Positions 6,715 through 64,000 of a stretch of DNA of 64,000 nt are shown in pieces (position 1 is the first letter of the stretch; the number at the start of each line of letters is the position of its first letter). Source of the DNA: Octopus sinensis (Eukaryota); contig NC_043011.1 in the NCBI RefSeq assembly GCF_006345805.1, positions 65,670,464 through 65,734,463 of the forward strand, given 5' to 3'. The translations under genes and the position numbers were made by a program. The notes beneath the pieces were generated by a model. That model was not told where the DNA came from. It was given only the letters and a program-made list of their open reading frames with translations, and ran no database searches.

Positions 6715-6745
6715 CTTAGCATTGTTTCTGGAATTTTTATTTGCC
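6715..6745 (-). CDS. G1 last coding exon: GK-stop (CDS 6745-6737), then 3' UTR
   Basis: Acceptor ttttctttcag, phase 0, ggc aaa taa. Possible donor gtacgt at 6714. Confidence 0.7.
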
Positions 6746-7639
6746 CTGAAAGAAAATACGAATAGGACGAATGTGAAATTATTACCAATAACATTTTATT
6801 TACCTAGAGCAGATTTGTTTGGGGTTATCATAATCTCATTTGCGTAGAAGAAATTAATAGGCTTAACGTAACGCACTTCCTGAATTAGATTTGTTTCATC
6901 CAATGCTGTGAGAATACATAAAAACTAAAAATAAATTTAGGGTTTATACATAAACGACCCTGTTAGCCTTTTTGTAAACTCTACATCATGAAATTCTGCA
7001 AGATACAACAATAAGAAACATCTTTCAGAATTTTCTTTAAGATATCAGAACTGAATATATTTTTGCGATATTAAGTTTATTCAAATCTGAAGCTGTAACA
7101 TCTGAGCGAAGAAATTTGCTTTGCTGTGCTTTTGTATCTTCTATTTTGTTTCAGTCTTTAGACTCAGTCTATGACATGTCACTACATCAAGAAACGTTAG
7201 TCGAATTTATTTTGCAGTTTATGCTTGGAATTTAATCAAACATTGCATCTTGCTGTACACCAAGTTTACGGGCCCTGAAACAAGGACACATGTCAACCGG
7301 TAATGGGGACAAAAACACATTCACACATATGTGTGTATCATATTTATATACACACACACGCACACGCACACACACATATGTATATATGAACATATTCACA
7401 AACACACACACTATCACAAACACACACACATATATATCGTGTTGTAAAATAATGCAATCTTCTAATTAGGGTAAAAATACGAATACATTTAGACATGCTA
7501 GATGTAAATAGACACCTTTATTTTTCAAAATTTCGGATCTAAGCGTCTTAATATATTTTCAACGGTGTACAATTTACAATGTGACAATTCGTTTTTCGTT
7601 CCAGGCGCCATTATATTAATCATTAGCGAAGAATTACCA

Positions 7640-8760
7640 TGTTACGCACAAACATTCAGCAGAACTGTCAGGTTTTCAAGGAGTTCGTATTGTTCGTCAT
7701 TTTGAGACTGGTCTTAGCCATTAAAAAATTGCCGAAAATCTTCAAAATGCTCTTTCGAATGTTAATAGTGTTATAGTGCAAATCAAAAGCCAAAGAGAAG
7801 AATCAACTTATTTTCGTCCCGGCCAAATCTAGGCACTCGGAATGGATGATTCAGTGTTTGAAGACAATTGTGGCAAATGAACCCCTTTCGAAGGCTTCTG
7901 ACAGTACAAAAAAACCTAGAAGTTACTCCAAGAGAATGTGTGTTACATATCTGCATAAGCTTAAGTATTATGGACGAATATCTAGAAGAAAACCTCCACT
8001 TCAAACAATTAATATTATAAAAGAAATGAAATGGGCTAAGGATATGTCAGAGAAATTCAGTTAATTTTGGGTTAGACTGATTTTCTCAGATGAATCCAGA
8101 TTTGAATTACTTTCAGACAGTGGACGTGTTTGGGTCTGGATGTTTTCCAATCAAGAATTCGATTTTAAACGACTCCAACTAACTGTGAAACATGACGGTA
8201 GCTCTGTAATCGTATGTGGAGCTATCACCAGCAATGGTCGTTCTGAGATGGTCGGATGTGTTGGAACTATTAACACTGAAAAATACATCGAAATATTAAG
8301 CAACGACTACTTCCGATTTATTCAAACGATTGCACAAAGGAAAATGAACTTTTATTAATGAAATATTCGGCTCCACGAAGCAGAGCGGAAAGGAATCATC
8401 AATGGGTGACTGAAAATAGGTTCGGAAAGCTTCCTTGGCCGAGCCAATCTCCTGACATGAACCCAATTGAAAATCTCTGGAGCATACTAGATAGAGCTAT
8501 ACGAAAACACAAAGGAATCCTAAATCTAAAGATGAATTGTTTCGATTGCTGCGTGAAAAGTGGATAGAAATTCCACACGAGACAAGCCCAAAGATCATCA
8601 GTTCAATGGCCAAAAGAGTTTCTGAATTAAAAACTGCAAAATGTATGTCAACTAAATACTAAAGTATGTCGTCCTATCTATCGACTACATTGCAATTGTT
8701 CGCTTTGCGTACAAAAGTAAAGATTCTGAAAATTAAGGATGTCGATTTGCTTCCTGCATA
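7640..8760 (+). mobile_element. Degenerate Tc1-like transposon in G1 intron 4
   Basis: IFSDESRFEL, HDGSSVIVCGAI and WPSQSPDMNPIENLW motifs in broken frames. Confidence 0.9.
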
Positions 8761-9020
8761 TATACGTTTAAATATTTGTTGTGCAAGATTTTATTGGCTA
8801 AACTGGCAAAATGACCATTCCGAAATATAACAATATATATATATATATATATATATATGTATATATAAATTTATATATACATATACATTTTTGTTGGAGA
8901 GAGTTCGCTACAGTGCCATGTATAAGGAGAGCTGATAGACGAATGTTTCATTTTCTTTAAGACAAGTTAAATATTTATGCATAATCGAAGAAATATTTGG
9001 AGGAAGAATAAAATGCTTAC

Positions 9021-59851: not shown

Positions 59852-62673
59852 TATTTCTAAATCTCAAAACAAGAGATATTCAGCAACAGTACTTTGGTGA
59901 AAAGATCATTTGCCGACATAACATGGCTTTCCTGGTTTAGGAGGAATGTTGCTGTAATTTAGCTCCAGGAGACATCGTCTCCAGCTGGCTACGCCACACG
60001 ATCAGTGCCGTTATATTTTCGAGCAAGGGAATCTAGCATCCCCCCTCAACTGAAAACTATATCTGTGTATCGCGATCCTTGGTTTATTTCCCTTCATAAG
60101 CAAAGAATAATTGTTCGGTCGAATATTGTTAAGAACTGGGTGGGTGTGCTAGATTCACTTGTTCGAAAATATAATGACAAGGATCGAGTTTTATAGAAAT
60201 CTGGAGAAGATGTCTCCTGGGGCTAAATTACATCAACATTCGTCCTAACCTAGGACTGCCGTGTTATGTGTGAAATGATCTTTACTTCCTGTCGTTACTA
60301 AAGGAAAAGGAAGACAAGATTTTGAATAGTGTTATAAATTCTCATAACTGACTGATAACACACTTTCAAGCCCGTTCACATCTACGTTTAATTTTGGAAA
60401 TATGTACTGAACACACTCTAATTATTATATACGTTAATTAATGTTCATAGAAATGAAATTAATTATAAAGTATTATAAAGGCAGTAGTTATATATCACGA
60501 TGAAAATATTATAAACGATAAGATCAAATTATACTTATTGTTACGTTATATAAATTGCACGCTATACAAAAAAACAAACGCCTGTTTCTTACTATAATAG
60601 CACTGATAAAGGGTAATTGAACAAATATAATTTGTCGCAAGAATAAATATATTAAGAAATGCTACGATATCTAAAGATAATTCCAGAGGTTTTTTTTAAT
60701 GAATAAGGACAATATCGTGCTGTGATTCTACATAGTGATCTCGTACTTACTTATGACTCCCAATAATCTTGAGTTTTATATTATTAATTTTTTTATTTAT
60801 ATTTATATGGTTGTATATTATTTATTTTGAATTCGTTTGCGACTCAAATGATAACTTTTCGTTGCAAAATGACAGCAAATTTCGGTATTTTGTTCACATT
60901 TATACACTAAATGTTACGCTGAATATTGCATGTTTGAGGGATACATATTATATACGGAATGGCAAATTTATTTTACCAGCATAAGATTGGTGAATCTAAA
61001 ACAATATTGTACATCAGTACTCGCTCTATCTCTCTTTCTCTATCTCTCTCTCTCTCTCTCTCTCTCTCTCTCTCTCTCTCTCTCTATATATATATATATA
61101 TATATATATATATATATATATATATATATATATATATATATATATATATATATATGTATATATATATTTATATATATATATATGTATATATACATATATA
61201 AATTCTAGTGTATATTTGTTTGTGTGTTTTCGTGTGTACACACACACGTAAAAGCATATATATATATAGATATATACATATATATATATATATATGTACA
61301 TATCATTAACCAAGGACGTGGTTGAATATAGTCCAAGATTTCATCAATTGCAGCTGGTTCCAAGCGTCACTACTTATTCAATTCTCAGTAAAATTGCAAA
61401 GTGTGAAAAGTTTTAAAGAGGACACCTCCTCAGCTACGTTAGAATTTGGCATAAATAGTTTGAGATTTGGTTCAGTAGAAAAAATCTATATGAAAATATG
61501 TGAGTCTTCAAGGTGGGCAGGAATGTAGGTTTTCATTTTCACTTAACAAAATGTTTAAATTTTAAATAAATGTCTACTTTCCATAGGCTTAAATGATAGA
61601 AAAATAGAGGAGGAATTTGAGAATCGTTAGACACATTTAACAAAACTCAGTAGAGAAAATGTTATGAGGGGAAATGTTATGAAATGTAAAACGCCCCACG
61701 CAATAATTGTAATTATAAACACGAATGTCTTTAATGTAGGGTGGCGGAAATGCTGGCAGAAATTTTACGAGACCGGGCGAAATTCTTAACGGATTTTTTC
61801 CCATCTTTACGTTCTGAGTTCAATTTCCGCGAAGGTCATTTTATCTTTCGTATATTTTATTGTTTAAATGAAATATTTAATATAGTTATTTTCAAAATTC
61901 TGTTGAAATAGGGTAAAGTTATCTTTTATTATTAATCATGTTTCACATTTAATTAACTTGCTTTCTGCTTTTTTTTGCTTTTCCTTTTTAGTTGATTTCC
62001 TTTTGTTTTATTTAATTATTTAATCAGTCTTATTCATATATACTTGATTAATATGTATCTAACTTAATTGGGGAGGAATACAATCACTTTTCGCTAGGTC
62101 TGTGATTATATTCCAAATTTATTTTTGAAATTTAAAGAATAATTGAAGGGGATTTCTCATAATTTAAATTTATATTAATGGGATGTAGGTAATTTTAAAT
62201 TGTGTATATCAGATATACTAAATGAATAACGTATCCTTAAAAACTCAAAAGTAAGCTGCAGATAAAAAGAGAGTAAAAATACTAAAATATAAAAAATATA
62301 AAACAAAATATAAATAGGTATAATTTTTTTATAAAGTATTAAAACAAATAAAAAGATAATACAAAATTTTTAAAAATGAGAGATGAAATGTTCTGAATAT
62401 GAAATAACACCATTGGATTCTTAATATTAGTTTAGCGAGAGATACATATGAGACACGGTCTGGGTTTACGATGGATGAAATATATTAAAAATAACCGTTA
62501 TGTGTAACTGATAAAGCTTACATTCCAATCGTCATTGATTGCAGTATGCATATTTCAAGCGTGGTGATATCTCTTAGATAACATACATTCTAATATGTAT
62601 ATGTATAGATATATTAATGAATGTATTGCATAGTAGTTATTAGAGCTCCTGTTAAGGAAATAATATTACTCAC

Positions 62674-62710
62674 GGGATATGAGAAGTGCAATAAAAATGA
62701 GTATCTTCAT
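62674..62710 (-). CDS. G5 exon 2: signal peptide MKILIFIALLIS
   Basis: As G3 exon 2. Confidence 0.8.
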
Positions 62711-64000
62711 AATGCCGTTTCCTGTAAAATGCTTGTTCTGATGGTGTATGGTTCACTTCTGTTTTAGGATCTTCAATTCCCTTCCTCGTTACTTCATTTA
62801 TATTTTGCAATTTAATGTAACAGATGGTTTAGTCAGAGTGTAGTTTCAACATCTTTGTGATTAACGTTCTATATTTGATGCTTGTATAATATATCTGAGA
62901 ATTTATTAATTTCAGTATTGATTTGCTTTCTATGTGGCCGTCATGTTAATGCTAATTTAATGGAGCTGTGCTAGTATGAAACCTACATCATATATTCCTC
63001 TTAAATGTATAGCGAACATGATATTCCAGTGTTTGAAACTTTCAATCTGCATAAGTCTTTCGTTAATTATATTCAGTGAGAATATAATATATTGAATTAA
63101 TATTGAGTGCTCAATTGTATCAACGTATTGATGCTATTAAAGTATTTATATAATTAATACGAGCGAGTATATATACATATATATTTGTTAATAATATATT
63201 AATATAAGTAGTATTAAGAAATCAATATCAAAACACATCAGAAAGATATACATGTGTGAAAAAAATGATTGTTGTATTAAAGATATATTAATAAATGTAA
63301 ATATGTATAAAAATATATGTAAATATGTATAAGTAAGATTATATAACGTATATTACAGTTTACAAGTTTTGAATTAATTATTTAAAGCACCTTACGATCG
63401 TTTAACATTAGAATTGTCCCTATAATGAACTCCTATTGTGATAAGCATTTATAGACAACGCTTCTGCTCTTCAGAGATATAAAATTAGAATTGTGTATAA
63501 CATATTGAATGATAGATTTTGTTTTTTTTATACTTTGAAGTAAATGTATAAAGTATTATTTGTTTGAAGGATAAATTAACTATTAAAAATTACTGCATTT
63601 GATGAGATTCTTTAAATCCATATATACTTCCTTGGTTATTCTTCTGCAATAATCCATAATATTCATATTTAAAATCCGTCATATTATCGTTCCAAGTATA
63701 GTTCATATAGTTAGTTGAGAAATGTGAAATTTGTATATACTTTTGTTTGATCCTCTTGAAATTCGTATGTCTTCTTGGTAATTCCTCTGTAGCAATCCAT
63801 AATGCCTTTGTATAAATTTCATTATATTATCTGGTAATCTAAATATAATGCATATTACAAAATCAAAATATATTTAAAATATAATTTGGTTCTCTCATAT
63901 ATTTCGTCATGCACCAATCTCTCAATTTAACAACCATACCTTGTACCACATACTCAGAAGTTACTGACAGCCTTTGGCAAAGAGAGACAACATCCTAGTC

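Follow-up and report, generated by a model that had tools for sequence, protein, structure and literature searches.

The minus strand of a 64,000-nucleotide (nt) stretch of the Octopus sinensis genome (NCBI RefSeq assembly GCF_006345805.1, contig NC_043011.1, positions 65,670,464 to 65,734,463; the whole stretch is called the window here) carries a series of short, cysteine-bearing exons. The question is whether these exons belong to genes and, if so, to genes of what kind. A reading of the letters alone (hereafter the sequence-only reading) had proposed five tandem copies of a secreted six-cysteine peptide gene, from a family that it did not recognise. Judged from the DNA sequence, the window contains part of an octopod-restricted tandem cluster of genes for predicted secreted, disulfide-rich peptides. 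Overall, it is likely that these genes encode a lineage-restricted family of secreted, amidated and helical peptides under diversifying selection.

Intact genes and their relatives

Two copies in the window, named G1 and G3, are intact, and the exon boundaries, splice sites, phases and translations proposed for them were found to be correct to the base on reading the sequence. Intact genes comprise five exons, of which exon 1 encodes a hydrophobic leader of 12 residues, exons 2 and 3 encode a mature domain of 62-68 amino acids (aa), and exon 4 (31 nt) adds only Gly-Lys-stop. The introns are canonical GT-AG introns in phases 1, 2 and 0, and the spliced precursors comprise 79 aa (G1) and 78 aa (G3). 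In G1, exon 1 (15996-16032; all gene features given here are on the minus strand) starts with the ATG at 16032, encodes MKILIFVALLIS with the hydrophobic core of the putative signal peptide plus the first base of His13, and ends at a GTGAGT donor in phase 1. Exon 2 (11688-11793, 106 nt; acceptor tttctag, donor GTATGA; phase 1 in, 2 out) codes for the signal cleavage region and Cys0-Cys3 (HAASECDIWGVCNRFARYACPEQLRYTKGYGSRGC), and exon 3 (9021-9108, 88 nt; acceptor ttttcag, donor GTAAGC; phase 2 in, 0 out) codes for Cys4-Cys6 (AGFKDLLACLTEDISWQCHDAFKKHSGCYQ). Exon 4 (6715-6745, 31 nt; acceptor tttcag, donor GTACGT) begins with GGC AAA TAA, with the stop codon TAA at 6739-6737, and is 98-99% identical in G3 and in G7 and G9, two copies located outside the window. 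The last exon, exon 5 (6255-6345, 3' end approximate), has the acceptor ttttacag and two AATAAA at 6283-6273; its homologue in RefSeq models from Octopus bimaculoides is the last coding exon (MASPISTILTALLVILFKKN). Since exon 4 carries the stop codon, exon 5 is probably a 3' untranslated region (UTR) exon in O. sinensis. A TATAAAT motif at 16118-16124, 86-92 nt upstream of the G1 ATG on the same strand, is a candidate core promoter, and the flanks are 97% conserved among the copies with the same type of exon 1 (A-type).

G3 has the same layout. Its exon 1 (39090-39126) encodes MKILIFIALLIS plus one base, exon 2 (37310-37412, 103 nt) encodes HAATSSLSWRECQRLGKQRCYVEYSQYISSRRDC, exon 3 (33917-34004, 88 nt) encodes GGYKDLLSCFTSDVERQCYRRFKKNHWCFH and exon 4 (31318-31348) again encodes Gly-Lys-stop; the homologue of exon 5 begins at ~30948. 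Exon 2 measures 106, 103 or 121 nt among the paralogues, the differences being multiples of three. G1 and G3 share the proposed scaffold C-x7-C-x13/14-C-x8-C-x8-C-x9-C, and its six cysteines are invariant in the family. However, G1 has seven cysteines rather than six, the extra one lying five residues before Cys1 (in SECDIW), and G7 and G9 carry a seventh as well. The general description of tandem, same-strand, short precursors with a conserved hydrophobic N-terminal leader, a fixed cysteine scaffold and hypervariable loops was thus supported, with this correction to the cysteine count.

That the family is unrecognised was only partly borne out. No Pfam family was matched by the five precursors available (E up to 10), no PDB sequence was matched by the family profile (E up to 10), a word-based single-sequence protein search with G1 gave no match, and neither the family loci nor the peptide strings were mentioned in the literature (full-text search). 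However, a hidden Markov model (HMM) search with the exon-3 peptides against 1.84 billion representatives retrieved XP_052830539.1, 'uncharacterized protein LOC128249941' of O. bimaculoides (E=2e-10), and a seven-sequence profile also found LOC128249942 (XP_052830540-42, three isoforms) of the same species. These two RefSeq genes, both annotated as 'uncharacterized', were the sole homologues found. BLASTP gave E=5e-40 and 9e-39 to their RefSeq proteins; G3 is 74% identical to LOC128249941 (79% at the protein level in exon 2), and G10, another copy outside the window, is 64% identical to LOC128249942. The gene IDs of LOC128249941 (XP_052830539.1 and isoform X1) and LOC128249942 are consecutive, which suggests that the two genes are neighbours. 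In the mature-peptide tree, G10 grouped with LOC128249942 (94/95) and G3 stood beside LOC128249941, while G1, G7 and G9 formed a long-branched clade (98/99).

The two species also agree in gene structure. The junctions of XP_052830539/40/41/42 match the O. sinensis models (ISH/AAT, DCG/GY, CYH/A.., ..K/MASP, with the junction at the slash), and the alternative first exons of the LOC128249942 isoforms all join precisely at the exon 1/2 junction. According to the alignments, the octopod family has in common a leader ..(I/A)LLIS-H followed by W-x2-C-x7-C-x13/14-C-x8-C-x8-C-x9-C, together with junctions after LIS(H), after DCG and two residues after the last cysteine, in phases 1, 2 and 0. For these predicted models, the match of splice sites, phases, motif strand bias and O. 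bimaculoides junctions is far beyond chance. One difference lies at the C-terminus, where the RefSeq models run on via exons 4 and 5 and end in a hydrophobic tail (106-124 aa in total), whereas the A-type genes of O. sinensis stop at Gly-Lys. Skipping of the 31-nt exon 4 (9021-9108 joined to 6255-6345, and the equivalents in other copies) would leave exons 3 and 5 joined in frame and append the hydrophobic sequence MVSPISKIRTALLVILLKNY followed by a stop, which resembles the tail of the O. bimaculoides RefSeq models. Such skipping could switch between secreted and tethered forms.

Three other candidates for relatives were discarded. A match to Ornithodoros turicata XP_064469463.1 (a 1711-aa tick repeat protein, E=1e-9) was treated as a repeat-amplified chance match because hhalign gave it a probability of 3.7%; its repeats (e.g. 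residues 776-798) contain KDFLSKFTEKVEAQC nine times compared with KDLLSCFTSDVERQC in the octopus (10/15 identical), and its leader is similar (..VALLIS..AASKC). A 205-aa metagenomic match was disregarded as a low-complexity repeat, and the Sepia sex-pheromone precursors were rejected as multi-peptide precursors of 248-252 aa.

Divergence of mature-peptide exons

The sequence-only reading had compared the family with conotoxins, and as regards the mode of evolution this comparison is apt: identity is 55-73% in the mature-peptide exons but 99% in the 400 nt of intron 5' of exon 3, the ratio of nonsynonymous to synonymous divergence (dN/dS) exceeds 1, and the cysteine codons are conserved by position. 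The leader, introns, exon 4 and UTR are 95-99% identical between copies, and the flanks of exon 1 are ~94-99% identical. In contrast, only 60-64 of the 88 nt of exon 3 (67-73%) are identical among G1, G3 and G9, compared with 396 of 400 nt of the intron just 5' of it (Fisher p 5e-19 to 9e-16). For exon 2, the identity between paralogues is 55-64%, with ~110 nt before it and ~60 nt after it almost identical. When G1 and G9 are aligned over the whole gene (94.6% identical), identity is lowest in exons 2 and 3 and in a microsatellite beside exon 2. An internal control is provided by the B-type pseudogenes located in the same repeat units, whose exon 2 is identical at 100-101 of 101 nt in four units. 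The cysteine codons are fixed by position in five paralogues (C1 TGC, C2 TGT, C4 TGT, C5 TGC).

The Nei-Gojobori dN/dS of the mature region, which is based on only ~35 synonymous sites, was 4.75 for G1-G9 (47 nonsynonymous vs 3 synonymous, p=0.003), 1.98 for G1-G3 (p=0.04) and 3.4 for G7-G9, and G1 and G7 differ by four nonsynonymous and no synonymous changes. For G1-G9, dS was 0.08, close to the intron divergence, as would fit strong positive selection after a recent duplication. In the G1-G3 pair, however, dS was 0.30, far above the intron divergence, and the G3-type exons are older than the split from O. bimaculoides ~34 million years ago. These two observations suggest that the exon lineages are older and that gene conversion or unequal crossing-over homogenised the sequence around them, the exons being spared by selection. 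Old exon lineages and gene-converted introns, and not rapid recent change, may therefore account for part of the exon/intron contrast. Recent positive selection and homogenisation around old exons probably both contribute.

Accelerated exon evolution is known from snake-venom PLA2 and three-finger toxin genes, in which coding exons diverge far more than introns and UTRs. The octopus genes resemble them in the excess of exon over intron divergence among tandem paralogues. However, the proteins and taxa are unrelated, the octopus contrast is sharper (99% vs ~68% across the exon boundary), and intron gene conversion is a live alternative.

The repeat array and its decayed copies

A tandem segmental duplication of 23-24 kb occupies the window in ~2.7 copies (2442-64000), and its units are, by self-BLAST, 95-97% identical except in exons 2 and 3. 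Each unit contains one A-type gene and one B-type pseudogene. The A-type exon 1 starts at 16032, 39126 and 62710 (spacings of 23,094 and 23,584 nt), and the B-type exon 1 starts at 27333 and 49956. The five minus-strand copies counted earlier thus do exist as five exon-1-like sequences, but only G1 and G3 are intact, because G5 has lost exon 2 and Gly-Lys-stop, while G2 and G4 are frameshifted, carry a TAG and lack exons 3 and 4.

G5 retains an intact exon 1 (62674-62710) and a G1-type exon 3 (57365-57452, 97% identical). Judged against G7, ~4.1 kb including exon 2 is gone at a deletion junction located approximately at 57895-57910: positions 1-4768 of G7 align to 1-4809 of G5, and 8917-11802 of G7 align to 4806-7691 of G5. 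Because exon 2 is missing, splicing of exon 1 to exon 3 would be out of frame. Moreover, exon 4 of G5 (55036-55066) reads GAC GAA GTA TAA (DEV-stop) in place of Gly-Lys-stop, and the Gly-Lys signal is lost. The B-type pseudogene G2 has an exon 1 at 27295-27333 (MLSISIFIALLIS) and an exon-2 relic at 24794-24896 with an in-frame TAG. In G4, exon 1 (49918-49956) is identical to that of G2, and the exon-2 relic (47470-47572) has the same TAG and matches G2 at 100/101 nt. Since the B-type exon 1 is 1 nt shorter than the A-type, its donor is in phase 0 and clashes in frame with exon 2. Exons 3 and 4 were not found for G2 or G4. Alternative donors and acceptors were sought for both copies and none restores the frame, and both were rejected as working genes.

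The search for further members covered 244 kb around and including the window. A regular expression for the exon-2/exon-3 motif gave 14 matches on the minus strand and none on the plus strand in this region. At least 11 family loci are present on the chromosome-scale scaffold C15, at ~65.63-65.83 Mb. Outside the window and on the same strand, G7 (G1-like), G9 (84 aa, divergent) and G10 (divergent) are intact, and G6 and G8 are B-type relics. G0, also outside the window, is decayed: its exon 1 is B-type, its donor is GC and Cys5 has been lost. The exon-1 sequence of G1 occurs in six copies genome-wide with at most one mismatch, all at the C15 locus or on the unplaced contig C10872, and whole-genome searches with the exon-1 DNA and four exon peptides confined the family to these two places. 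The family has grown by segmental duplication of 23-31 kb, and copies have been lost by deletion and frameshift.

Contig C10872 (48.8 kb) carries the G9-G10 segment again in inverted orientation; the peptide exons are identical, and the contig is probably a haplotig or an uncollapsed duplicate. A very divergent family exon 2 (GATAGSDAWNACEAKARETCNDEMTRYLRVSAEC) lies ~39 kb upstream at C15:65631090-65631191 on the minus strand (about -39296 to -39397 in window coordinates); its ag/gt sites are canonical and its phases correct, and an exon 3 for this copy was looked for and not found. The cluster thus reaches further upstream. Still further upstream, ~84 kb from the window, the minus strand, which is that of the family, has a weak match resembling exon 2 (E=3.8; C15:65586622-65586708) that may be a very distant member or noise.

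The array also contains repetitive elements. A Tc1/mariner-type transposase (Pfam DDE_3, E=2e-6 and 9e-4) has left remnants at 7777-8567 (+) in intron 3 of G1 and at 56096-56671 (+) in the G5 unit, the frame being split into several open reading frames (ORFs). Fragments of non-LTR (long terminal repeat) retrotransposons are located at 977-1783 (+), 19295-19711 (+) and 41972-42346 (+); the ORF 1502-1783 matches zf-RVT (E=1.5e-5), and the other fragments resemble reverse-transcriptase C-termini by eye, with no Pfam match. Immediately 3' of exon 2, each copy has long (TA)n, (CT)n and (TATC)n microsatellites (~11290-11640, ~36810-37260 and equivalents), and apart from the exons it is only these repeats that lower the identity between paralogues. 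Between G4 and the next unit, the segment 50363-50767 is an extremely low-complexity, A/T-rich tract of homopolymer codons.

Predicted processing, comparison with known systems and function

The leader consists of M-K, a nine-residue hydrophobic core and S-H-A, a layout that by eye fits the -3/-1 rule. The cysteine-rich domain begins 3-10 residues past it, with no pro-region flanked by dibasic sites. GGC AAA TAA (Gly-Lys-stop) stands at the start of exon 4 in G1, G3, G7 and G9, and LOC128249942 has Gly-Lys-Lys, so that all five carry the glycine plus basic residue typical of substrates of peptidylglycine alpha-amidating monooxygenase. The family peptides are therefore probably amidated. AlphaFold2 predicted a helix over residues 3-26 of the G1 exon-3 peptide, with a predicted local distance difference test (pLDDT) score of 77. 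The net charge of the paralogues ranges from +1 to +6: G3 has an isoelectric point (pI) of 9.2 and a charge of about +6, and the others have +1 to +2 and pI 7.7-8.3. Based on general knowledge of secretory peptides, the leader would route the precursor into the endoplasmic reticulum, and signal peptidase would cleave after ..LISHA according to the -3/-1 rule. Three disulfides would fix a largely helical fold, a carboxypeptidase would trim the lysine, and the monooxygenase would turn the glycine into a C-terminal amide. A peptide of ~7-8 kDa (7.1-8.0) would then be released by a regulated secretory cell, and the seven-cysteine forms (G1, G7 and G9) could make covalent dimers.

Several known systems share parts of this architecture. 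Like conotoxins of Conus, the octopus family combines a conserved leader, a fixed cysteine framework, hypervariable loops and dN/dS > 1 with position-conserved cysteine codons, Gly-basic amidation signals and coding parts split by long introns. However, it has no pro-region, its cysteine spacing is different and much wider, its mature peptide is encoded by two exons with at least half of the domain predicted to be helical, and it belongs to a cephalopod and not a gastropod. None of the five precursors matched a conotoxin Pfam family (E up to 10), which leaves them outside the conotoxin superfamilies. The family also differs from defensins (cysteine-stabilised alpha-beta, beta- and big defensins), as its cysteine spacings are 7-14, the half from Cys4 to Cys6 is predicted to be one helix and no Pfam match was found. 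Attractin, a waterborne peptide pheromone of Aplysia, is helical and not known as a hypervariable tandem array; no sequence similarity, Pfam match or PDB-sequence match connects it with the octopus family. Its format, a signal peptide directly followed by one product with three intrachain disulfides (PMC3484142), recurs in the octopus precursors, with a putative signal peptide and three predicted disulfides, the product measuring ~58-68 aa across the two. Because their defining features are absent, the family is not conotoxin, defensin or attractin.

The MgCRP-I family of Mytilus galloprovincialis has been described as taxonomically restricted, multi-copy and secreted, with six cysteines, a conserved pre-region and a positively selected hypervariable mature region (PMC4558851). 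It resembles the octopus family as a six-cysteine mollusc family with preserved cysteine codons and a phase-1 intron followed by a phase-2 intron (PMC4558851). However, MgCRP-I has a C-C-CC-C-C pattern in a single last exon and a pro-region with a dibasic site (KR or RR) (PMC4558851), whereas the octopus family has neither adjacent cysteines nor a pro-region, and its mature domain is spread over two exons. As predicted here, the octopus family is a new family of a familiar kind, since it works like conotoxins and MgCRP-I yet falls outside both, and its only relatives are two unnamed RefSeq genes.

Besides the small number of synonymous sites and the excess dS of G1-G3 mentioned above, several points count against the interpretation as secreted, amidated and helical peptides under diversifying selection. 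The exact O. sinensis proteins were not present in a collection of 15 billion proteins, the coverage of which for the O. sinensis annotation is unverified. The leader is unusually short (13-14 aa), and the signal peptide was judged by rule. Structure prediction was run on exon peptides only, and the exon-2 half was uninformative (pLDDT 47), in contrast to the helix of exon 3. LOC128249941 has no Gly-Lys and reads into the hydrophobic tail; therefore, amidation and secretion may not be universal. Near-identical 23-kb repeats may be mis-assembled in a long-read assembly, which bears on the copy number and the G5 deletion. Finally, the ranking of functions given below is based on analogy and base rates alone.

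The diversifying selection, the rapid birth and death of copies and the restriction to octopods suggest a ligand for a fast-changing outside target and not a conserved internal hormone. A target in reproduction or chemical communication (sperm-, egg- or mate-directed, in an attractin-like format) is tentatively ranked first, because the format fits single-product, three-disulfide pheromones and genes dating to the octopod ancestor peak in expression in male reproductive tissue (PMC7656900). A possible, somewhat less favoured role is that of salivary or venom peptides, produced by the posterior salivary gland and injected into prey, with loops tracking prey channels or receptors as in conotoxins. 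Octopuses are venomous, C-terminal amidation signals are common in venom peptides, and the conserved leader, fixed cysteine scaffold, dN/dS > 1, exon-restricted divergence and position-specific cysteine codons form a signature of toxin families. However, a full-text search of the literature on octopus salivary-gland peptides found no such six-cysteine family, the octopod venom genome paper is silent on cysteine-rich novel peptides (PMC7656900), and the precursors have neither a propeptide nor similarity to a Pfam toxin family. It is unlikely that the peptides are antimicrobial or immune effectors of haemocytes, skin or mucus cells that diversify against pathogens like mussel myticins or MgCRP-I. 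Mollusc antimicrobial and cysteine-rich families typically show tandem expansion and a hypervariable mature region (PMC4558851), and the strongly cationic G3 would suit such a role, which was placed third because G3 alone has this property; the other paralogues are near neutral, and no defensin or other antimicrobial-peptide Pfam family was matched. MgCRP-I, with the same signature, showed no antimicrobial activity (PMC4558851), and therefore the hypervariable cysteine-rich signature is not diagnostic of function.

The Gly-Lys signal, which implies a regulated secretory pathway, and the expression of many lineage-specific octopod genes in nervous tissue (PMC7656900) could also point to endogenous neuropeptides or hormones acting on the animal's own receptors. 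This is improbable, as dN/dS > 1, the ~46% identity of neighbouring paralogues and their frequent pseudogenisation are unlike conserved hormone-receptor systems, and no neuropeptide family was matched. We similarly doubt that O. sinensis makes a membrane-tethered surface protein by skipping exon 4 and using exon 5 as a hydrophobic tail. The O. bimaculoides RefSeq isoforms do terminate in ..MASPISTILTALLVILFKKN, and exon 5 of O. sinensis retains MVSPISKIRTALLVILLKNY plus stop open in phase with exon 3; yet exon 4 of G1, G3, G7 and G9 has strong splice sites and a stop ahead of exon 5, and LOC128249942 has a Gly-Lys-Lys cleavage/amidation site before the tail. Since the exon-5 copies are 97-99% identical like all other non-coding sequence, the open frame there says nothing on selection. 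Least probable by far is a dead or non-coding locus with open frames that are relics or prediction artefacts. Three of the five window copies are demonstrably decayed, and the proteins are not in the protein collection for O. sinensis (with its unverified coverage). However, five divergent paralogues keep frames, six cysteines, Trp, Phe, splice sites and multiple-of-three indels despite 30-45% nucleotide divergence, orthologues are kept in O. bimaculoides across ~34 million years, and the true pseudogenes in the same repeat units look quite different.

A bolder extension, which we regard as a long shot, is that octopods have their own conotoxin-like system. Diversification would be limited to two ~100-nt exons by exon-sparing gene conversion or a locally higher mutation rate, and the 31-nt Gly-Lys-stop cassette exon would have freed an amidated peptide from a tail-anchored ancestor, the form modelled in O. 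bimaculoides. Such an origin would parallel that of secreted three-finger toxins from membrane-tethered Ly6 proteins.

Few disulfide-rich secreted peptide families have been described in cephalopods, and none that evolves like cone-snail toxins or mussel cysteine-rich peptides. The locus defines an orphan family that is open to synthesis, folding and screening: O. sinensis has four distinct intact mature peptides, and O. bimaculoides adds two annotated relatives. It also exemplifies genes with tiny exons whose products are missing from the O. sinensis proteins of the collection searched, the coverage of which for that annotation is unverified. The array represents a clean natural experiment, in which the mature-peptide exons differ while the ~20-kb repeat units stay 95-99% identical and the pseudogenes serve as a built-in control. 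If the peptides are reproductive or venom components, they would provide a handle on the evolution of mate recognition or prey targeting in octopuses.

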